DNA of 63,674 bases, filler included, from Klebsormidium nitens (lineage: Eukaryota; Plantae; Klebsormidiophyceae), in NCBI GenBank assembly GCA_000708835.1. It is 5 parts of 5 records of this genome, joined end to end, with 100 filler letters (N's around TTAATTAATTAA, not from the genome) between each part and the next. Parts side by side here need not be neighbours in the genome. Positions count along the whole stretch, not along the records: positions 30,110 to 42,055 come from DF238110.1; 4 more parts are not named here. One strand, written 5' to 3'. Below are positions 30,110-42,055 of the stretch, in pieces. A model generated the notes under the pieces. It had not been told where the DNA came from, ran no database searches, and worked only from the letters and a program-made list of their open reading frames with translations. Positions within the stretch are counted from its first letter, which is position 1. Each line of letters opens with the position of its first letter. Made by a program: the position numbers and the translations under genes.

Positions 30110-30298
30110 CCAACCGTCACATCAACTATCAACAATCTGACCCAAATGTGTGCGCGCGCGACGAATCAGCTGGGTTGTATTGGGGCTGGATTGGGCAGCG
30201 TTCTGAATCCAATTTTCTGAACGAAAGACTGAACGAAATGATGCTCAGATCAGCAAGCAAGCAATTATCGGCGGCACCACCACAAATTAGACGACATC

Positions 30299-31507
30299 AT
30301 GAGTATCGTCAGAGACCAGGTTTTTGCTGGGCCTTGCACCGGTATCGTGCTAGATGCTCTGAATTGGTTGGACGAATTCTGGTCTTGGCAAGGCGCTCGG
30401 CAATCGCCATGGCAGGAGCTTGAAAGACTTGAAAGTAAAGTGAAACGCTTTGTGAATGCGGTCCGGGCTTCTGGCTTTCATGTGGTAGCCGTTGTGGACT
30501 CGGACACCAAGACCGAGGAGGCAGAGAGAAAATGGCATCATCGGCGCAACAGGGAAATGCGAACTGAAGAGAAGAAAATGGTCCTTGCAATCGACTCTTT
30601 CCTATCAGAGGCTCTCCGTAGGAACAGCGTCAGGGTTGTCCGGCCCCTTTCCGCAGATGCGGATGACGTCATTGCCTCACTCTCAGCGGTTGGTGGAGCA
30701 AGCACGTGTGTTTTGAGCAAAGACAGAGACTTCTTCAGGTACAAGCCAGCAGTCAGGGTGTGTGATGGATGGATAATTAAACAGGGGAGGCTGTTTCTGA
30801 GTCCTGCTACATCTCACCGCTCAAAAGCAATACCCAGGGTTGTGGACACATCGTTAGCAGAGACGAGTGTTGACGCTGACAGAGATGGTGAGAATAAGTA
30901 CAACCCTAGCATGCGTGGGGGTTGGATCATCCGCGGCTGTACTAGTTCATCGGACAAGAAGATGGGAAATCTACACAAAATTATCAGGCCCCTGCGAGCA
31001 GCTGTATATGCCAGGTTAGGGGAACAATCTGCCAAAGAGAAAATCCCTGAGTGGAATGAAGAAACGGATAGCGTCCGGTGGGTAGAGACCGTGGTAGCAG
31101 CTGATGCTTCTCTCGACGCTTTGCTCGACGATCCTGAGGCAGCCCTATCATGGATATTAGAACGAGAAGGGCCCGAGTGCGAGGAGCACTGGCGGAGGGT
31201 TGAACGTGCTTTCAACAGATGTGCTTTGGTGGCGGAGCTCTGTGCCACAGCCAGCGGGGGTTCCAAGTCCGCTCTTGATATTCAGAAGCTCTTTTCTGGG
31301 AGCATGCCACCCCTTTCGAAGGCAATGCATCCAACGTCTTCCCTCTTGGAGACGCCGTCGCCAACTCCTCCCCGCCTGCTGGAGACATCTCCTCCGACGT
31401 CATCCTTCTCGGAGAGGGCGCCGCTCTGCACCATGGCATCAGATAGCGCGTACAATGCTCCTACAGATAGGGTTAGGGTTAGGGTTTGTTTCTGTATTAT
31501 TTTGTGA
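30299..31507 (+). CDS. PIN-fold XPG/FEN1/Asteroid-like nuclease, 402 aa
   Basis: Acidic motifs VLDALN, VVDSD, ADADDVIA, VLSKDRDFF. Confidence 0.75.
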   Translation: MSIVRDQVFAGPCTGIVLDALNWLDEFWSWQGARQSPWQELERLESKVKRFVNAVRASGFHVVAVVDSDTKTEEAERKWHHRRNREMRTEEKKMVLAIDSFLSEALRRNSVRVVRPLSADADDVIASLSAVGGASTCVLSKDRDFFRYKPAVRVCDGWIIKQGRLFLSPATSHRSKAIPRVVDTSLAETSVDADRDGENKYNPSMRGGWIIRGCTSSSDKKMGNLHKIIRPLRAAVYARLGEQSAKEKIPEWNEETDSVRWVETVVAADASLDALLDDPEAALSWILEREGPECEEHWRRVERAFNRCALVAELCATASGGSKSALDIQKLFSGSMPPLSKAMHPTSSLLETPSPTPPRLLETSPPTSSFSERAPLCTMASDSAYNAPTDRVRVRVCFCIIL

Positions 31508-31616
31508 CATTCAGGAATTGTTGCCACCGAGCAGTCCGCAGAAGTCATGCGCGGCGTCGCCCACTCTTTGGCACCGGTTGCAGGGGGTGCGCAAACATCC
31601 GTGCCGCGCGTATTGA

Positions 31617-32336
31617 ATGCATGAAACAATATCAGCCCAGTGCAATATGGAACTAGCATGTACGGACTCTGAGTGGGCGCAGATATTGGTCGTTTCAGTA
31701 TCGCCGCGCCCACTCCAAGAATTGCTCACACCACTGTTCCCTGACATGTCCATGGAACGCATCAAACTCATCGACAATGTGTTGCTGGGATGGAGACTGG
31801 ACGATGCCGACGTATATAGGACATGGCGAAACAATGCCGATGAATGCCGTAGGCACGTTCAATCGTTGCACACATGGGGCGACATGTCACCAATAATTCA
31901 GCTCGCCAATCGACTGATCGCGATGTGTCCCAAAACTTCAATGACCCCTTGGATCAAACGTACTAGAAACTGTGGGAAGTACTATGCATGCCGCAACTCA
32001 GCGGGGTCTCTGTTTGCACAGATTCTGGGGCGCGTTTCAAACATCGTCTGTGCATTGTACATCTCGTCTCAGTTTGCAACTCTGCGGAAGAATGCAGTAC
32101 GACAGCAGCAGCTGGGAAACGGCTTTTGCCAATTCGAGGCACCACCTCCCAAACTCTCTCACCAGATGAAGCAAGATGCCATACGATTTGATCTTTCGAT
32201 CCAAGAAACGTTTGCGATGGGTGTAGAGTTTGGGAGCAAAGTGGGGTATTGCGAGACTGCTGCGCAGATGCAATACCTAAACGACCTGTTGAAAACTACT
32301 GAACTCTGGCTCAATGAAGTTGCCTCTACCAATTGA
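31617..32336 (+). CDS. Hypothetical protein, 239 aa
   Basis: Long ATG ORF with ordinary protein composition, co-oriented in a gene-dense segment; no motif recognised. Confidence 0.5.
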   Translation: MHETISAQCNMELACTDSEWAQILVVSVSPRPLQELLTPLFPDMSMERIKLIDNVLLGWRLDDADVYRTWRNNADECRRHVQSLHTWGDMSPIIQLANRLIAMCPKTSMTPWIKRTRNCGKYYACRNSAGSLFAQILGRVSNIVCALYISSQFATLRKNAVRQQQLGNGFCQFEAPPPKLSHQMKQDAIRFDLSIQETFAMGVEFGSKVGYCETAAQMQYLNDLLKTTELWLNEVASTN

Positions 32337-32695
32337 ATTATTTGACAGTCTCGCAATTGAAAACAATTGCTGGATGCTCCATTGCTCTCTAATTTGCCGC
32401 CAGGTGCACTTTGGTCAAGTCCCAAAGGTCCAAATTGCCTCTATACTCTGCGGGAACTCTAAAAATCCAATCGAGTCACAAGGTCCGTCCGATCTAACTA
32501 CTTTCCGGTCAGTCCATATGAACCGTCGATAAGCGGAAAAAACGAGTCACCACATGTAATACATTCACGTGAAACAAATCTAAACACCTTCGTACACACG
32601 TGGTTTCGACCGGCCGTCGCGAGGCATTTAAACGACGAAAACCTATCAAATGCCTCTGTTGGGCGTTCCAACCCACCAGTGTCATGATCTAAAGT

Positions 32696-34155
32696 GTGAG
32701 CAAGATGGCGCCCTTTCGGGTGAAGCATGTCTGGGACATGGTGGAGCTGCGCGGGTTGGCAAAGAGGCTGCCAAAGCCAGAGTGCATGAGCTTTTACGAT
32801 CCAGACGTGGTCAAGCGGCACGTGCCCGGATTGGAGAAGGTTCTGGAGAAGGCGCAGGCATTCAAGAAGCACTATGAGAATGGCAGGACTGAGACCTTCT
32901 TCGTGTATGATACGGAAGAGGGCAAAGTGTATGTGAGGGGGATTTGGGAGGCTAGATTCATGCACTTCCACCACCACATGCCCCGTGTTGCAGAGGATAA
33001 CACCTGCAACTATGAAGACTCTCACACGGCCCGCTTGGAGAGCGCACCCGTGCGCAACAGGGGCAGGAAGAGGAAGAATTCGGTGGTCATCTCGGACTCA
33101 GAGTCAGAGTATGAGGATGCGGTGGAGTTCATGGCGAGGTGTAGCAGGTGCAGCTCCCTGACAGAAGAGAAAACCATGGGGGTTCACGGGGATGTCAAGT
33201 TTTGCAAGGACTGCGTCTTGATCTGCGACCTGTGTCTGGAGAGCGAGCCTCTTCTGACCAACATGAGCGACCAGTGCGGCCATGCTCTGTGCGTCGAATG
33301 TGGGCATGGTCTCGCCAAGGGCATGCAGGAGGTGGGGCAGATTCCAGTCTGCCCTCTGTGCCACCTCGTAGTCCAGGACCGCAGCCTCCTGCCTCAGTTG
33401 GAGTGGAGCGTCCTGAAGGATCTGTGTGGCAAGGATGAGGCCTTGCTCGTGAACATCGACCGTATCATGTGGCGTCAGACGGCTGCAGCCGTGGGAGGGC
33501 GACCCTGTGAGTGCGGTGCGGTCGTCACCGGAGACATCACTGAGGACGACGAGTGCCCCAACTGCGGTGAGCTGCTGCTGGAAACGATGGAGCGGCGCGA
33601 GATGGTGGAGCACGACGCGGCCTTCCAGGAGGGTGCTAAGGCGGCCGGCGTCAGGTTCATCAGGTGCCCGTGTGGTTATGGTAAGCGGTGGACCACATAA
33701 AATCTTAGGTGCAATCAGAGTTGATGAGCTACAATATTGAAGCATCTGTCCAACTGCTACCGAACGGAAAAGTGCGAACGAGACGGCTGTCCTTCTGTGA
33801 GCAAGAGCGCCTTCTATCCAATCTCTTTGGGGATCGCCACCAGGACTTTAGTTGTGGTGGAATTGCCACCTGCTTTTTTGTGTGTGTTAGTTCTGCGACG
33901 AGAAACATAATACGTTTTGCCACTGTAGGTGATTGTTGTTGTTGATCATACGACAGATTTTCCCCCCTCCTTGCAGCGATCGAGAAGAACGGGGGCTGTA
34001 ATCATATTACTTGTACCAGGTGCAACACAGACCTCTGCTACCAGTGTTCCAAAGTTATCAAACACGATGAGGTGTCAGATCACTACAAGTCGGGCATGCC
34101 GTGCAGGCAGTTTGCCACCGCTGCCGCCTGGGACGAGGACGAGGACGAGGATTAG
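32696..34155 (+). CDS. RBR (RING-IBR-RING, Ariadne-like) E3 ubiquitin ligase, 2 exons
   Basis: RING1 CDLC...CGHALCVEC...CPLC; short IBR; intron 33681-33976 (GTAAGC...ttgcAG) gives RCPCGYA-IEKNGGCNHITCTRCNTDLCYQC, an Rcat motif with the catalytic Cys; stop at 34153-34155. Confidence 0.85.
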
Positions 34156-34256
34156 CGTGTAGATACGTAGCTGGCAGTTTGAGTGAGAGGGAGGACGAAC
34201 TGTACATAGGAGAATGGTCCGCTCGATCTGGGCGACCCGATTGTAATGGGGTCTAT

Positions 34257-34643
34257 TCAGTCATCAAAGTGCTCTCTTGGTCGCACCCTCTGCTTCGGTG
34301 GCTTCACTTGATCAATTCCGTGCAGTTCACAATATGGGACGCAGATATCCACCCTGCTGACCACGACGGCTGCTCTCTCGAATGCCCGTTGAACTATTCT
34401 CCAGTCGCATGCTCTGAAAATCTCGTGTTGAATGTGGTAGGCGTCGAGTAGGTGAAACGCAACCCTCTCAGCCATCAATGCATCGACGACGCCGACCAAA
34501 CACTCTATATCGAGAACGAACGCATATCTTCTTTGCACGTACATCCCTGGATTGGTTGAGTTGGTCATCCCCAGTTTCATCACGGTTGAATTAGGGGATT
34601 TTGCGCAATAAAGGAACCCAGATTTGATGGTGTCCGCTTCCAT
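34257..34643 (-). CDS. T5orf172/MUG113 (GIY-YIG-like) domain protein
   Basis: GFLYCAKS...MKLGMT...RY...AERVAFHLL...HEIF pattern. Confidence 0.75.
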   Translation of the reverse strand: MEADTIKSGFLYCAKSPNSTVMKLGMTNSTNPGMYVQRRYAFVLDIECLVGVVDALMAERVAFHLLDAYHIQHEIFRACDWRIVQRAFERAAVVVSRVDICVPYCELHGIDQVKPPKQRVRPREHFDD

Positions 34644-34740
34644 TCCTTTATCTTATGCAGACACATGATGTGTCCGTAAGCTTCAAACGCATTGCATCTT
34701 CTTGGTATCCGAGCATCATACATTTTTCTGAACATACGGA

Positions 34741-35028
34741 ATGAGTAGGTACTACATCGGTCCCTCCACCATACAGGGTCAGGGAATATTTGCTAGGAAA
34801 CCCTTGCCCGCTGGATCTTTCATCGGCGTTGCGATAAGCGGCAAGTCTATCACTCCTGAATTTGGTGCTTACGTAAATCATAGTTATCTTCCCTCTGCTC
34901 ATCTCCGGTCCAGGATGGGTCAGTGGGCGCTATATGCATCTCGCGACTTGGACGAAGACGAAGAAGTGACCGCGGACTACAACCTAGCCCCTCCCTTCAT
35001 CCAGGGGGCGAGAAGCACTTTCGTCTAG
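34741..35028 (+). CDS. Minimal SET-domain methyltransferase (vSET-like), 95 aa
   Basis: STIQGQGIFA, YVNHS, ASRDLDEDEEVTADY. Confidence 0.85.
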   Translation: MSRYYIGPSTIQGQGIFARKPLPAGSFIGVAISGKSITPEFGAYVNHSYLPSAHLRSRMGQWALYASRDLDEDEEVTADYNLAPPFIQGARSTFV

Positions 35029-35561
35029 GCCGCACTGTTCGCTGGAAATGGTATCTCCGAGCTCAGGATGCTGGGATACAGATGAAGCCCCTTGCCCTCT
35101 GGCAACTGTCGCCGCATGGCATCGAGACTCAAACTCATATCGTTTTGCAAACCGTCCATGAAGTATCTCAGCCTCGCTTCTGCGAGCACATCGTTTGGCA
35201 TCCACCTCTGGAGCTGCCAGAGTTTTTTCATGGCCCTGCTCGATTGTTCGAGGGCGTTTACGTACGTTTTTTCGCGCACACGTCTGCTAAAATCGTTCTC
35301 GCATGCCTCGAACTTTTTGATGGCGTCGGTGGCCTTGTCAAAGGATTCTGGCCCTCCAGAGCGCAGGCTAGGCGGGGGCAGTCCGCGGCGTTGGACTTCT
35401 TCCTCAGGAGGTTGCAGGCTGTCTATAAACTTTGGCGCATGATAGAGGAAAATCAGGATGAGAATTGCATGCAGTATAAAGTGCAGCTGAACATTCATCA
35501 GCTTACTTTTTGCTTGCATTTTTTCTGCAAGTATGAGAATGAACGAAACACTACTGGTCAT
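35025..35561 (-). CDS. Hypothetical protein with N-terminal hydrophobic segment
   Basis: 178-aa ORF, FILHAILILIFLY followed by a helical soluble region. Confidence 0.5.
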   Translation of the reverse strand: MTSSVSFILILAEKMQAKSKLMNVQLHFILHAILILIFLYHAPKFIDSLQPPEEEVQRRGLPPPSLRSGGPESFDKATDAIKKFEACENDFSRRVREKTYVNALEQSSRAMKKLWQLQRWMPNDVLAEARLRYFMDGLQNDMSLSLDAMRRQLPEGKGLHLYPSILSSEIPFPANSAA

Positions 35562-35913
35562 AGCTGCAGCGTCGGCAAACTTCTTCTTCCAGTATCAGCT
35601 CTTTGATTACACTAAGAAAGGTACCCCAAGGTATGGAGATTGGCGACGGAAACTGTTTGTTTTGTACTACAGCCTGTCCGCTCTGGTCGCTTCCTACTTT
35701 GCATTCGTATTCTTTCAAACGAACACCCCCCTCTTTCTTCTTTGCGTTCTCGTCGCCGTCTTATCTCTCGTACCTCTGAGTTTTTTTGCAGAGGGACGGG
35801 CCGAATGGGACGCAACGTCGTCACATGATTGGCGCCATAGATTATCCCACGGGGTGGCGTTGTTGAATATGGGGTTGATCATCCTGTCCACGATCATGAA
35901 AGTGAGTGTGTGA
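35533..35913 (+). CDS. Small multi-pass membrane protein, 126 aa
   Basis: About four hydrophobic segments separated by basic residues. Confidence 0.55.
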   Translation: MRMNETLLVIAAASANFFFQYQLFDYTKKGTPRYGDWRRKLFVLYYSLSALVASYFAFVFFQTNTPLFLLCVLVAVLSLVPLSFFAEGRAEWDATSSHDWRHRLSHGVALLNMGLIILSTIMKVSV

Positions 35914-35964
35914 TCGTCATCCTCATCGTCCTAATCGTAGAAAATATATTGGCTTAGTCTAGAC

Positions 35965-37805
35965 ATGCGCCGTTGCAAATGTACTACCGTACGTGGACAG
36001 CGCTGCAAAAATGCAGTGGCAGGAGCGAGGAGTGAATTCTGCCATGTTCACAGACAATGTGCAAATGTCAGCAACGACAAGCAGGGCTGCTTTCAGTGCA
36101 AGTGCATGACGTTGCAGGGGGTTCGATGCCGTAGGTTGGTGCTCTCAGCCGCATCTCTCTGCTACCAACACACGAAACGATGCAGCGTGTTGCTCTCAAA
36201 GATGAGGGCTCCGCGGAAAAAGAGCCCCATCAAACTCCTGGAATGGAAGCCCGTGTCTCCGATTCGACTAGGATGGAAAGAGACGAGAGCATCCCCGATC
36301 AGGCTTCCATGGAAGAAGGAGAGATCTCCATCGCGAATTGGGTGGCGGGAGAATGGATCACGCACGAGTGCAACCAAAGCGGTGAAAGGAAAGAGTCCCC
36401 ATAAACTCCTGGAATGGAAACCCGTGTCTCCGATTAGACTAGGATGGAAAGCGCCGAGAGAATCCCCGATCAGGCTTCCATGGAAGAAGGAGAGATATCC
36501 ATTGCGAATTGGGTGGCGAAGGGATGGATCACCTCCACTCGAATTCGACGACAGGTTCTGGAAGGACCAGATGGCCATACGGAAGGCTCGCATTCTCGAG
36601 GCGTCCAGAGCCAAAGCGGCGTCGGGAGGAAAGAGCCCGCTTAAACTCCTGGAGNNNNNNNNNNNNNNNNNNNNCACTCTTCAAGTGCAAACACGAAAGC
36701 AGTCAACAGTGTGCTAGGTGACTTGGTGGGATCAATCTCGGGGGCTGCAAAAGCGGCAGCAGATAACGCGAAAAGGGCCATCAATCTGGCGTCTACCCCA
36801 ACAGAGTTGAATCATGCGATCTCTGCCAACCGTCATGCCACAGCTGCCCTCGAGGCTGCGACTAACGGACAGAATATGAAGGCGGTCAACCATGTCAAGG
36901 AGACTGAAGCGCATCTGAACGTGGGCAGCCCTCATTCGGATGAGTGCAAACGGCTCCTCACAGAGCTAGGCTTTATGGGGCCCGGCGTGAGCAAAAGGAA
37001 AGGTGCGTCCAGCTTCAGACGCTGGGCTCTGTCTCATCACCCAAAAAGAGGTGGAGATGCGAACCTGTTTGCGAGGGTCAACGCTTGCTATTGGTCCACG
37101 ACCGTGCCTGCGAAGGCGGCGCCGAGATCAAGGAAGAAAGCGTCGGCCGGAATCATAATTCACCATATCAAGGGCTTATACGAGCGCCAGAGAGCCGAGA
37201 ACGAGGCGCGGCACAAGTCCGAGTTGGATGCAAGGGATGCAAAGCTACTGGCAGAGATAGAGCGTCTCAGGCGGGAGAGGCCAGCGCCGGCGCCTCTGGC
37301 AGGAGGTCCTCCGCCGCCGCCTCCTCCTGGTGGTCGAGGAGGTCCTCCACCGCCGCCTCCTCCTGGTGGTCGAGGAGGTCCTCCACCGCCGCCACCACCG
37401 CCTGGTGGTTTTCAGATGGGTGGTGCAGCGGTGGGACCGGTTGCAAAGCTGTTCAAGGACTTGGGGTACTCTGTGCCCGAAGCAAAGAAGCTGGCTGCCG
37501 TGATCAAGGAAAGCGCCCCCTTTAAGGACGTCCCAAGCGAGGAGGAGATCGTGACCGACTATGCACCACAACTCCGCTGGGCGGTAGATTCTCTTGTGTA
37601 CCTGAACAAGGGACTCGTTGCCACGGAGCCCCTCTTTGACAAGAGGTTGGCTGCATACAAGGGGCATTTCTCGAGAGCCAAGGTGACGCAAGCCATTGGG
37701 AACGCTAACGTTGCAAAGGTGCGCGATGGGATGAAGGCATCTTTGCAGAAGGCGCAGCATATGAAAGCACTGCAGGACGCTCTCGCCCGTCGAAGAGTCG
37801 ACTGA
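35965..37805 (+). CDS. Probably one protein across a 20-N gap: two Cys/His Zn modules, basic SP/W repeats, degenerate J-like motif, coiled coil, polyproline-RGG tract
   Basis: C-x-C-x-T-x2-G-x-RC...C-x2-H twice; 171-bp duplication at 36220/36391; the frame of the 36711 ORF is open back to the gap at 36675; RRWALSHHPKRGGD; (GGPPPPPPPGGR) repeats. Confidence 0.7.
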
Positions 37806-37935
37806 AACGCTTTGATCACATCCGGGCGCGCGTACGCCCGCAGTGCGCCGGCGGCCTCCTGCTACAGTCGTCGCACACTGGGCGATGACAGTCGCACAAA
37901 GTCAAGGAAAAACTTTGTCCCATGAGTTGTATCAA

Positions 37936-39054
37936 TCATGCCCGAGCAAAGTTAGGCACCGAGTAGGGTTGAACTAGCTCCACGCTCGACCAGCTGGGTA
38001 TCTGCCCGTACGTACCCTCCGCGCTCGTCCAGTTGGTGTCTGTCCCTATCTCGGGAAGACAGGCTGAGTTCGAATCTTGGACCATTGTAAATGCCTGCAG
38101 TAGTAACTGATCCCGGTCGAACATCATCCCGACAAGGCGGCCTTCCGGAGCCTTCAGCGTGTTTCTCAAACGCACCAACCTATCTCGTAGTCGTTGAGAT
38201 AGCTGCACGGTTGGTCCGTTGTAGACCATAGTGCAAATGCACAGCAGGAGTTGTGAAGCGGCTCCCACGATTAGGTCGTCTTCTTCATTTTCGTCGATAA
38301 TAGCTTGTAAACGCACGATGGTGGTTGCTCTTTGTTCTGTCTGCTCATCGCACCTCATCAGCACGCGCTCTCTGCTTATCTTGCTCACGGCGCGGCTCAC
38401 GGCCAACCAATGAGAAGTCGAACTGATATCCCGCATCTGCGCGACGACGGTGCATATTGTCGTCAATTTGTGCTTGGGATTGTCGCCAACGCAACAGAGC
38501 ACTTCGCCGGCTTGTTGTTCGAAGCGAGGTTGAGACGAACAACGAACGAGAATGCCCACCAGCTGATCTAAATAGGGAGATACGTCGACGGCGGTATGAA
38601 CATTCTTCGGACGTTGCGCACCTGCATCCTTGTCGAGACACTTGGCCAACGTCGCGAGCATCTCAGGGGAGACCGAATGAGTCTCGAGGTGGGCAAGTGC
38701 GATGACGAACGGCCTGATAATTCGTCCCTTGACAAAAGCCTCGTTCGATGACAGGAATGTCGCGGTCGCTCGACTCGAGTTCTCCGCCAAGTATTCCAGA
38801 GCCAACAGAGGTTTTTCGTTTTTCCAAGGGATCCTATGACATAGTTGCAGCACCCTGCGTATCACATCCAGAGAATATCGTCCTTGACGAGTAGGTACGT
38901 CGTGCTGATCAAAGTCTGCATTGAGCTCGATGCTTGCAATATACTGTGTGGTCGCTTTCAGTATTCCACTGGAATGAGCTGCCTCGACCCAAGCTTTGAG
39001 ACACCAAAGCGGCCAGCGTGGTGGCGTACACAGATTCATTTTGTACCATACCAT
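37936..39054 (-). CDS. Hypothetical helical protein, 372 aa
   Basis: Long intronless ATG ORF, Leu/Val-rich helical pattern (possibly ARM-like); no motif confidently recognised. Confidence 0.6.
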   Translation of the reverse strand: MVWYKMNLCTPPRWPLWCLKAWVEAAHSSGILKATTQYIASIELNADFDQHDVPTRQGRYSLDVIRRVLQLCHRIPWKNEKPLLALEYLAENSSRATATFLSSNEAFVKGRIIRPFVIALAHLETHSVSPEMLATLAKCLDKDAGAQRPKNVHTAVDVSPYLDQLVGILVRCSSQPRFEQQAGEVLCCVGDNPKHKLTTICTVVAQMRDISSTSHWLAVSRAVSKISRERVLMRCDEQTEQRATTIVRLQAIIDENEEDDLIVGAASQLLLCICTMVYNGPTVQLSQRLRDRLVRLRNTLKAPEGRLVGMMFDRDQLLLQAFTMVQDSNSACLPEIGTDTNWTSAEGTYGQIPSWSSVELVQPYSVPNFARA

Positions 39055-39172
39055 ATGATTGGCTGAACTCAGTCATGAGATTATCCTACATTATCAGACG
39101 CGCCCCATATCGTGTTGCCGAATGGCGTGCAGAAATCGGGTCAAGAAAAATGGTTGGCATCCTGTAACATGT

Positions 39173-40141
39173 CTACGACTCGCTACTCTCGTCTGCGTAT
39201 TGCCACCCCCAACCGGCTGCAAAGAGCCCGTGGCCTCCTGCTACACTGCCGATGTTGCACGCAGAGATCCCGACGATCTCTGCTGCCTCCGCTATGGTGC
39301 CAAATACGGCCAATTGCTCTCCGGTGATCGGATCCAGCTGGATGACGCTACGATTGGTCGTCTTATTCCTGCCTTGTTCCGTCGGAGTGGCCCAGCGCAG
39401 GTTCTCGACGCGGTTGTCCGCTTTGTCTCCGTTGATGTGGTCCGGAGATGCTTGGAAGATGGAGGGGGGTCGAGGAAGGTCCTCCCGATGACGTCGTGGA
39501 CCCTGAGGTCCCTCAACTTCTTATCGATCGTGGCCCTGAATGCTTTGTAGCCATGCAGGTCTCTGCCGTAGCTCCGTCTCCCCCGCGAGTCTTGGATCCT
39601 ACCGCGGTCGCTCGCCTGGGTCTTTGGAAGCAGGCCCCAGCTGCTGACGGCCTCCAGCCACCTCTCGCCAGGAAGGTCGGCCTGCTCGGCCAGGTGCTCT
39701 GGTGTATATGAAAAACCGTAGTCGCGCCTGATCGTCTCTCCCTTCAGAGACCTTTCGACGAGTCCGTGATTGATTCCGAGCGCTTTGACGGCTGCATTCA
39801 CCGAATCGAACCGGGTCTCGTCTCCGGTGTGTGCATGGCGCGCGATGATGGGAGTTCCGAGGGTGATCCCGCACTTCTTGCCCGAGTCAGGGTTATCCGC
39901 GGCCGTCTTGCGATTGTGATCCGGCCTCGTGAGCTCCTGGAGGTTGGCCCAGTCGTCACCACCACCCTTCTCGATCGGGAGGATGTGGTCGCACTCCATC
40001 GCCTCCCCGATGTCGCGGCCGAGGGAGAGCGACAGGTTGAAGCGGGACCTCTTGACCAACTTCCTGTCAATTTTGATGTAGCTGTAGCCGTCAGGGAGCA
40101 CGGTCCCTTTGAGGACTCTGCCGGACTTGGCACTCCAAACC
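39173..40141 (-). pseudogene. Double HNH-NUMOD homing-type endonuclease, 5'-interrupted by IS607 and frameshifted
   Basis: VWSAKSGRVLKG, ECDHI...DDWANLQEL, RFDSVNAAVKALG; after a frameshift near 39450 the frame reads SPDHINGDKADNRVENLRWAT...VIQLD...FGTIAEAAE...WGWQY and stops at 39173. Confidence 0.85.
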
Positions 40142-40330
40142 GATGGATCATTCACTGAACAGACACGGACATTGATGAATCGCAGGGCGATTCTGTCATT
40201 GTCTGCCAGGCTAAGCATGGCAATATCTACCATGGCTCCATCTTGCAGTCGTCTTTCGACGAATCCGCTTCACGCATAGCGCGAAGGAGGATGTTCCTAG
40301 CACCATTGCAATCCCTGTCCAGGATGGAAG
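40142..40330 (-). ncRNA. Putative omegaRNA scaffold overlapping the Fanzor2 3' end
   Basis: Position between the RuvC-III coding region and the inferred right end; hairpins at 40249-40262 (GAAA loop), 40216-40234 and 40177-40193. Confidence 0.55.
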
Positions 40331-42011
40331 CGCATTGATCACACTGAAGAGTCTTGCTACTGCCCAAGTCCTCCTTCATGTGTCCACACCTTCCACAGGT
40401 CTTGCTTGTGTAGTGCTCAGATACGATTAGTACTATGGCGCCTCGGACAGCGGCTTTGGCTTTCAGCCGCTGCATAAATTTGTAGTGGGATAGAAATGAC
40501 ATCTGACGCACGGTCTTGCTTCCAATCCGCCTGCCGACCCGCTTGACCATCTCGCTGGTCTTGAACTCGGGAAGCAGGATCACCTTGGCCTTCCTTGTCA
40601 AGAAATCGGCTGTCTTGTAATGGAGTTCGTCTCTGAGGTGTGCCAATTTCTTTCTTACCTTGAGGATCCTTAGTCTCACTGCTCTCCTCTTCCGTCTGTG
40701 CTTCTTGATGATCCTCTTCTCAAACGAGATCAGCCTGTCCAGTTGGATGGCCAGTGAGAAGAGACGAGTTGCACAGCCATCTCCAAGCTTGAAGACCTCG
40801 CTAGGACTGTATGCGGTCTGGAAGGTCCGAATACCAGGGTCGAGCGAGATCACGGACTCCTTCACCTCATTAATTAAGGAACGCTCACCTTGTCCAATTG
40901 CTTCCGGGGTAGGCTTCTGATATGGTATGATAAGATAGTACCGCGCTCCATCGAACTGGATCTTGCAATCCTTGTTGATCTCACCTATGGTCCCGACTGT
41001 CTCGAACTCCCAAGGGCAGTAGGTCCCATAGATGATCAGAGTGCGCTTACCTCTCACCTTGATGGCCTTCTTGTCGACACCCAAACACCATCCTCGCCTG
41101 TCCTCCTTCTTCCTGGCTCTGAAACCCATGCGGAAATGAGTGATGTTCCCCTGTTTCAGATTCGTGAAGCAAGCCTTTGCATTCTTGGCAGCTTCAAATA
41201 CTGCAGCTGCCCTGACATTCTTGGGAGTCTTCAGAAGGAACGACGCATGGGAATTGACTTCGACTGGGGTGATGAGATCGCGAAGGTACATCTTGTTGTA
41301 GCTTGCAGTCTCGTTCATCAAGAACACCGCTTTATTGTAGCTATACCGAGCTGCATGCCTCCAGTCATTGAGGATCCGCTTCTGATGCTTCTTCGGTAGC
41401 AGCCTCACCTTGCGCGTCCTTATGAGCTTGGTCTCCCCTTCCTCCTCGTCCTCGCCCTCCTCCTCTGGTGTATCGTCTTCTACCATTCCATCTACAACTG
41501 AACACCTGAATGACTGCAAGCACGTCCTCTGCCATTTCTGCTTCTGGAGACTTATCGTCTTGTTGGAGAACCACGAGCTTGACACCGTGTCTCTCGAAGA
41601 TCCATGCAAGTAGATCGAATCCGAAACGACACAGTCTGTCTTTAGAGGCAACCACAATCTCCTGTACAAGCCCTCTCTCGCTCTGTTCCAGAAGGGATAG
41701 AAGTCCTTTCCTCTTGAAGTTAAGGCCGGATCCAACGTCGCTAACAACTGTGTGTCCGGGATATTGGTCAAGCAGATGCTTCTCCTGGCGGCAAAGGTCA
41801 TTCTTCTGTTTGTGACTGGACACCCTGACGTAGATGTAGGAGGTGCGCTCACAGTTTGGGTCGAGGCTGCTGAGGTCATATATCCGCTTGCCTCCGGGGC
41901 TTCGGTCAACCTTGATCTTGCCGGCGGCCTCCCATCTGATGAGGGTCCTGGTGCAGACGCTGAAATGCTTGGCTGCCTGAGACAATCTGACATAGCCCAT
42001 ACACGTGACAT
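40227..42011 (-). CDS. tnpB: TnpB/Fanzor2 RNA-guided nuclease, up to 594 aa
   Basis: RTRKVRLLP, HAARYSYNKAV, ISLDPGIRTF (RuvC-I D), ILLPEFKTSEM (RuvC-II E), TSKTCGRC...CDQC Zn finger, DRDCNGARNI (RuvC-III D). Confidence 0.93.
   Translation of the reverse strand: MSRVWAMSDCLRQPSISASAPGPSSDGRPPARSRLTEAPEASGYMTSAASTQTVSAPPTSTSGCPVTNRRMTFAARRSICLTNIPDTQLLATLDPALTSRGKDFYPFWNRAREGLYRRLWLPLKTDCVVSDSIYLHGSSRDTVSSSWFSNKTISLQKQKWQRTCLQSFRCSVVDGMVEDDTPEEEGEDEEEGETKLIRTRKVRLLPKKHQKRILNDWRHAARYSYNKAVFLMNETASYNKMYLRDLITPVEVNSHASFLLKTPKNVRAAAVFEAAKNAKACFTNLKQGNITHFRMGFRARKKEDRRGWCLGVDKKAIKVRGKRTLIIYGTYCPWEFETVGTIGEINKDCKIQFDGARYYLIIPYQKPTPEAIGQGERSLINEVKESVISLDPGIRTFQTAYSPSEVFKLGDGCATRLFSLAIQLDRLISFEKRIIKKHRRKRRAVRLRILKVRKKLAHLRDELHYKTADFLTRKAKVILLPEFKTSEMVKRVGRRIGSKTVRQMSFLSHYKFMQRLKAKAAVRGAIVLIVSEHYTSKTCGRCGHMKEDLGSSKTLQCDQCASILDRDCNGARNILLRAMREADSSKDDCKMEPW
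41365..42000 (-). CDS. tnpA: IS607 serine recombinase TnpA, 211 aa
   Basis: N-terminal MerR-like HTH (TRTLIRWEAAGKI...GGKRIY), YVRVSSHKQKNDL, DVGSGLNFKRKGL, DRLCRFGF, DVLAVIQVFSCR. Confidence 0.95.
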   Translation of the reverse strand: MGYVRLSQAAKHFSVCTRTLIRWEAAGKIKVDRSPGGKRIYDLSSLDPNCERTSYIYVRVSSHKQKNDLCRQEKHLLDQYPGHTVVSDVGSGLNFKRKGLLSLLEQSERGLVQEIVVASKDRLCRFGFDLLAWIFERHGVKLVVLQQDDKSPEAEMAEDVLAVIQVFSCRWNGRRRYTRGGGRGRGGRGDQAHKDAQGEAATEEASEADPQ

Positions 42012-42055
42012 TTGCTGAGAAAATAAAGACTGAGATTTGTACGCGCTTGTCCGCG

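Follow-up and report, generated by a model that had tools for sequence, protein, structure and literature searches.

An IS607-type element with a Fanzor2 gene, probably inserted in the coding sequence of a dual-HNH gene of Klebsormidium nitens

Layout of the locus

The DNA analysed here (the window, 63,674 nt with filler) consists of five parts of the Klebsormidium nitens genome joined end to end. One of them, at positions 30110-42055, is one whole scaffold of 11,946 nt (DF238110.1), the sole N gap of which comprises 20 N (36655-36674). The minus strand of this scaffold carries a tnpA gene, a Fanzor2/TnpB gene and an HNH gene in that order, with the HNH gene directly downstream of the Fanzor2/TnpB gene. 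The features considered below are the following.

42001-42055, minus strand: sequence 5′ of tnpA, 55 nt, as far as the scaffold reaches; the element's left end lies beyond 42055
41365-42000, minus strand: tnpA, IS607-type serine recombinase, 211 aa (Pfam and PDB matches)
40227-41486, minus strand: core ORF of a Fanzor2/TnpB-like nuclease, 420 aa from MVEDD (Pfam, PDB, motifs)
40141-40320, minus strand: predicted omegaRNA/fRNA scaffold (structure signal and cross-frame conservation); its 5′ limit is approximate
40140-40141, minus strand: GG at the putative right end; G 40141 is the last shared base, in codon 31, and G 40140 the fixed right-flanking nucleotide
40120-40139, minus strand: flank and would-be guide, TTTGGAGTGCCAAGTCCGGC, coding for (V)WSAKSG of the HNH gene; the first non-conserved sequence past the right end
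39173-40140, minus strand: remnant of a dual-HNH homing-endonuclease-like gene (Pfam, homologue alignment, tblastn)

The transposase and nuclease genes

The tnpA product has the domain order of an N-terminal MerR-like HTH (Pfam MerR, 4e-6, residues 7-41) and a C-terminal resolvase catalytic domain (Pfam Resolvase, 1.4e-19, residues 55-175), and includes the serine motif YVRVSS..Q. Its PDB matches are ISC1904 (1e-27), ISC1926 TnpA and the IS607-family transposase of IS1535. The tnpB-type gene follows on the same minus strand, overlapping tnpA by ~120 nt.

The core ORF of this second gene matches the Pfam families Cas12f1-like_TNB (8.6e-19), OrfB_IS605 and HTH_OrfB, and its best PDB match is 9b0l, the TnpB-like mimivirus Fanzor2 L79 (E 4e-27, residues 21-402). 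In pairwise comparison L79 scores 98 bits as against at most 36 for ISDra2 TnpB and Cas12f. The motifs are LDPGIRT at residue 215, VSEHYTSKTC at 355 (E357, C364), CDQC at 382 and DRDCNGARN at 390. In an alignment with 13-14 homologues of 54-94% identity, the RuvC-I Asp, the Glu of VSEHYTSKTC, both CxxC pairs and the RuvC-III DRD are invariant, whereas the position of the canonical TnpB Glu (PEF, 306) is variable. The catalytic Glu lies six residues ahead of the CxxC of the zinc finger; this spacing of Glu and zinc finger is a published signature of Fanzor proteins (PMC13565253). Because of this signature, together with the IS607 TnpA and the eukaryotic host, the nuclease was classed as a Fanzor2. 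Proteins of this class are encoded in the genomes of eukaryotes or eukaryotic viruses and are linked to an IS607-type TnpA; here the host is K. nitens and tnpA is adjacent. The domains and catalytic motifs of both TnpA and the Fanzor appear intact, judging by their sequences, and by analogy the Fanzor2 would cut DNA next to a TAM with the aid of an omegaRNA encoded at its 3′ end.

It should be noted that the +1 frame of tnpA is without stops (0 in 211 codons), and for this reason the Fanzor ORF reaches 594 aa: its frame stays open to 42011 and overlaps the whole of tnpA. Only 0.075% of codon-order shuffles leave that frame stop-free, and the +1 frames of five ordinary ORFs of the scaffold, of the Fanzor core and of the HNH remnant contain 3-23 stops each. 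The ATG of the long Fanzor ORF (42011) and that of tnpA (42000) are 11 nt apart, and the same extension of the Fanzor frame is found in the homologues P0001 (548 aa) and P0006 (586 aa). A tentative and, in our opinion, rather doubtful explanation is that the open frame shows how a bacterial two-gene element has been adapted to a eukaryotic host: a single capped mRNA would yield TnpA and an N-terminally extended Fanzor2 by leaky scanning between the adjacent starts. A Fanzor frame open across all of tnpA has not been described for bacterial IS607 elements of the ISXfa1 type; ISXfa1 and the other bacterial IS607 TnpB elements differ from the element described here in being bacterial and in their polycistronic expression. 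A candidate TnpA-binding motif (AATGTC..CGTGT), present both in the 55 nt 5′ of tnpA and at the right end, was dropped, as it was no better than those of 9% of shuffles.

The truncated HNH gene

The HNH remnant contains an HNH domain (PF01844, 2.8e-6), a NUMOD-like module (PF22083), HNH_3 (PF13392, 1.3e-8) and NUMOD1 (PF07453), and terminates at a stop codon (39173-39175) where its relatives also end. A word search returned 23 homologues (E 1e-62 to 1e-129), most of which are 340-430 aa long and have both PF01844 and PF13392. These proteins (P0121-P0143) form a family of ~370 aa with two HNH-type domains, in which PF01844 and the NUMOD-like module are followed by PF13392 and NUMOD1. Contigs of one and the same size are listed for several paralogues (up to five at 28,730 nt), and some members (e.g., P0122, P0124 and P0143) are truncated or frameshifted themselves.

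Alignment with 17 homologues of 62-83% identity revealed that the window matches them from VWSAK onward only, in agreement with the earlier note, which had described an HNH-like sequence that begins abruptly. In 15 of the 17, an additional 34-67 N-terminal residues precede this point and are missing from the window; the remaining two start aberrantly or are truncated there. The consensus of the extension, MVK..SQTKNAIY..KPLIPPPQ..WKQHHAY.AYYGRPDG, leads into the near-invariant WKQHHAY.AYYGRPDG(R/K/Q)(V/I)WSAK. Upstream of VWSAK the window reads instead ..RFINVRVCSVNDPS, which is present in no HNH homologue. A search of all frames of the piece for the missing N-terminal coding sequence gave only noise on low-complexity repeats, and nothing resembling the HNH N-terminus occurs in any frame of the 55 nt upstream of tnpA (42001-42055).

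The remnant also carries a frameshift, reported before and real in the sequence: a deletion of 1 nt near 39447, in a non-homopolymer context. Continuity with the frame of P0121 breaks after ..PPPSSKH (which ends at 39448) and resumes one base out at PDHINGD; correspondingly, P0121 aligns by tblastn in frame -2 as far as 39448 (88% identity) and thereafter in frame -1 (81%). A weaker structured stretch surrounds the frameshift (39331-39480).

The right end of the element

The sequence that replaces the HNH N-terminus is defined by an ORF on the minus strand (39292-40233), which starts with 31 codons (40233-40141) and continues as VWSAKSGRVLKG. Two other ORFs, P0149 and P0150, begin with the same 31 residues; they were found by a word search with residues 1-51 and by a full HMMER scan for which the 40 residues preceding the junction served as query, and are 84-87% identical to the window over the 31 codons at 40141-40233. 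After these residues P0149 (MVNITMLSLADNDRIALRFVNVHVCSVNDPS) continues with DKQKMAVYK.. and P0150 (MVDITMFSLADNDRIALRFVNVHVCSMNDPS) with VCFRGLANG... Thus, the three junctions share ..NDPS and then proceed into unrelated sequences, in which residue 32 is V, D and V. As far as the protein translations of the two ORFs and the DNA of the window tell, codon 32 begins with G in 3/3 junctions; codon 31 in the window is TCG. Since all three junctions have the 31 residues in common and a G-initial codon 32, the element should end in ...CCATCG|G (40141/40140), and the 31 codons ahead of VWSAKSG are assigned, by sequence, to the element.

In IS607 elements the crossover takes place at a GG; the nucleotide flanking the right end does not vary and counts as part of the guide-RNA scaffold (PMC10711439). 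The minus-strand GG at 40141/40140 has the character of this crossover dinucleotide, so that the right end is placed, on sequence comparison, to within one base. This is where the earlier note had put both the right end and a GG at the junction, and the two further copies, P0149 and P0150, bear it out by diverging, as the window does, at residue 32 and not elsewhere. The G that the note had set in brackets before the guide likewise agrees with the fixed right-flanking nucleotide of IS607 as a part of the scaffold (PMC10711439). Within 30110-42055 the element is not flanked by long direct or inverted repeats. To our knowledge, elements of the IS607 family have no terminal inverted repeats and cause no target-site duplication, and their left end has a GG.

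An ATG at 40233 opens an ORF of 313 aa, and one might therefore regard the HNH gene as whole, with a divergent N-terminus (MVDIAMLSLAD...) and a merely coincidental Fanzor adjacency. We assign next to no probability to this explanation. None of the 17 homologues begins with MVDIAMLSLAD, the occurrence of which in intact HNH homologues was the point on which the earlier reading could be checked; moreover, two unrelated ORFs begin with these 31 residues, and the supposed N-terminus overlaps sequence that other Fanzor genes conserve at their ends. This last conservation extends across reading frames. Fanzor homologues of ~60% identity end in ..LQDGAMVDIPCLA, and the window has LQDGAMVDIAMLSLA in the HNH frame, whereas its Fanzor frame ends in ..DCKMEPW. 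Conservation regardless of reading frame implies a constraint on the nucleic acid rather than on the protein.

For P0149 and P0150 the longest metagenome contig listed measures 84,801 nt, the size also of a contig with the Fanzor copy P0146; P0149 and P0150 may both be on one contig. P0146, which is C-terminally truncated, and the two right-end junctions are all listed with a longest JGI/IMG contig of 84,801 nt, a coincidence of size which suggests that this contig may hold two copies of the element. The HNH fragment P0143 (contigs up to 33,603 nt, as for the Fanzor copy P0145) was considered as a second insertion into an HNH gene and rejected, being without the 31-residue signature. Three scans of viral_contigs and the first scan of metagenome_contigs returned no relatives, and the second scan of metagenome_contigs returned only three distant HNH fragments of 34-52% identity.

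Predicted omegaRNA and guide

The 200 nt upstream of the junction (40141-40340) have a predicted folding energy of -72.6 kcal/mol and a z-score of -3.3, and 0 of 200 dinucleotide shuffles were as good. This bears out the earlier description of the 31 upstream codons as hairpin-rich and continuous with the Fanzor 3′ end. In a scan of the minus strand with sliding windows of 120 nt (39211-42000), the strongest signal of the locus was at 40171-40290 (z -4.2). Windows within 40141-40320 gave z of -2.9 to -4.2 and those within 40111-40410 mostly -2.5 to -4.2, and z was ~0 in windows just past the junction. Strong structure (z -3.3) is also predicted for a second stretch, at 40921-41100 on the minus strand, within the Fanzor ORF.

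We predict from these signals that an omegaRNA is encoded at the 3′ end of the element. Its scaffold would span the last ~30 Fanzor codons and the 86 nt after the stop codon. As only these 86 nt separate the stop codon from the right end, the scaffold must overlap the ORF, as it does in bacterial TnpB. In the predicted fold, a longer stem (40162-40209) encloses a perfect 7-bp hairpin, and a closing helix is formed by GAUGGA, inside the cross-frame conserved block, and UCCAUC, just before the terminal G. There are six distinct residue changes in P0149 and P0150: four would fall in predicted loops or bulges, one would turn a G-U into an A-U pair and one would break a terminal pair, which may be read as a slight hint in favour of the model. 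The guide would start at 40139, its length being taken from published TnpB and Fanzor guides. An Rfam search of the piece (E up to 1) returned nothing within the element.

A public gene model joining the two nucleases

The locus is represented in public data by GAQ92833.1 (our P0144), a model of 634 aa annotated as "putative HNH endonuclease [Klebsormidium nitens]". It maps to the window at 100% identity in three blocks (41486-40392, 40134-39562 and 39478-39176), thereby joining Fanzor residues 1-365 to the HNH body via two "introns". The existence of the model and the GT..AG borders of its first predicted intron are what speaks for a single spliced gene, that is, for a natural fusion of an RNA-guided with a protein-guided nuclease, which we nevertheless regard as very improbable. 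With the first "intron" (40135-40391), the zinc finger and the RuvC-III DRD, invariant in the 13-14 homologues, are lost; the second (39479-39561) deletes conserved sequence of the HNH family and merely bypasses the frameshift. Moreover, the 31 codons recur ahead of unrelated sequences, and Fanzor and HNH relatives occur on contigs of different sizes, with the exception of 33,603 nt (P0143, P0145), so that the pairing is not a conserved module. GAQ92833.1 looks like a gene-finder artefact. In other K. nitens models (P0005, P0007 and P0016), TnpA and Fanzor parts are likewise fused.

Origin of the nested arrangement

The reading which we consider very probable is that of an autonomous IS607-type element, composed of tnpA and Fanzor2, which is embedded in the coding region of a free-standing dual-HNH gene and whose guide RNA would run through the right end into HNH sequence. 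An insertion of an IS607/Fanzor2 element into an HNH gene was the central claim of the earlier note, and the TnpA and Fanzor matches, the truncation of the HNH gene and the right end common to three junctions support it. The left flank lies beyond the scaffold, and the insertion event itself would have to be reconstructed from the right side; for the same reason, a simple insertion is not separable from a deletion mediated by the element's end.

In the latter case, the element would have sat near the HNH gene, and recombination between the GG of its right end and a GG of the HNH gene (an end-mediated adjacent deletion) would have removed the DNA between them along with the 5′ part of the gene. 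The scaffold ends 55 nt upstream of tnpA, no HNH N-terminal sequence is present in the piece, and a serine recombinase in cis could yield such an outcome while keeping the right end intact. We think it unlikely all the same: it needs an additional event, and plain insertion suffices for an intact, GG-flanked right end like that of the other two junctions.

Under the favoured reading of insertion into the HNH coding sequence, the GG at the junction would be made up of the final base of an Arg or Lys codon and the initial base of the following Val codon in the motif PDG(R/K)VWSAK. The uninterrupted site in the closest homologue, PDGR|VW, would permit ..GG|G.. if the Arg codon is CGG or AGG. A transcript that begins inside the 3′ end of the Fanzor gene and passes through the right end would, by analogy with IS607 TnpB and Fanzor2, be processed to an omegaRNA. 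The scaffold of this RNA (~40141-40320) might be trimmed to ~150-190 nt, with the fixed G as its last base, and the guide would consist of the adjacent HNH sequence from 40139 downward. The complex of Fanzor2 and RNA could then cut uninterrupted HNH alleles next to a G-rich motif, which would favour re-copying of the element. By analogy with the Fanzor2 proteins studied so far, whose TAMs are G-rich and 3 nt long (PMC13565253, PMC10530073), a TAM of this type may be expected; the transcription and processing of the RNA and the nuclease activity are likewise proposed from such parallels.

Relation to known systems

The closest parallel is ISvMimi of a giant virus, with its nuclease ApmFz2 (ApmFNuc, mimivirus L79). 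Both elements combine a serine-recombinase TnpA with a Fanzor2 and with a 3′-encoded guide RNA, predicted in the present case, that passes through the right end. They also share the rearranged RuvC-II Glu beside the zinc finger, and the target context would be G-rich, as is that of ApmFz2 (PMC10530073). ApmFz2 differs in having a conserved non-coding region of ~200 nt past its ORF, compared with 86 nt from stop to right end in K. nitens. Furthermore, ApmFz2 has been shown to be active, whereas the present nuclease is known from sequence alone, belongs to a streptophyte alga and has only distant similarity to it.

K. nitens is also the source of KnFNuc, an RNA-guided nuclease with a 3′ guide RNA (Jiang et al. 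2023; PMC10530073). The element described here was considered to be KnFNuc itself, and this identity was rejected: KnFNuc is a Fanzor1, has a TTA TAM and does not reside on an IS607 element, whereas the present element is of the Fanzor2/IS607 type. A literature search found no published description of this K. nitens Fanzor2/IS607 element.

The interrupted gene resembles HNH/NUMOD homing endonucleases of the I-HmuI type in its HNH motif, its I-HmuI NUMOD-like and NUMOD1 modules, its HNH_3 domain and its membership of a multi-copy family. It differs from them by the two HNH-type domains in a protein of ~370 aa; the family is known here from its multi-copy distribution.

The known workings of IS607/Fanzor2 elements are unchanged by these findings. 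What the locus adds is a compact Fanzor2 (420 aa) of a streptophyte alga with an intact-looking partner transposase, and a clear case in which one mobile nuclease gene in all probability sits within another. A right end placed to one base, together with three natural guide contexts, should provide a basis for the design of an omegaRNA construct and of a TAM screen. In addition, a public model which fuses two selfish nucleases into one "HNH endonuclease" can be corrected.

Other features of the scaffold

The remainder of the scaffold (30110-39100) consists of dense, uninterrupted ORFs on both strands with few Pfam matches, among them a weak match to the N-domain of 5′-3′ exonucleases (30299-31507) and a small SET-domain ORF (34741-35028). 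In these respects it looks more like a virus-derived island than like ordinary nuclear genes of algae; no viral hallmark gene was found in the scaffold. An Rfam match to ar14 (37302-37414) is considered spurious, being on a proline-codon repeat and scoring 25 bits against a cut-off of 58.8 bits. The ORF at 35965-36717, which is interrupted by the only N gap (36655-36674), contains 171-nt tandem repeats (36219-36532, 90% identical) with units of the KSP.KLLEWKPVSPIRLGWK type. An ORF of 364 aa at 36711-37805 contains three 36-nt repeats (37301-37408) that encode GGPPPPPPPGGR.
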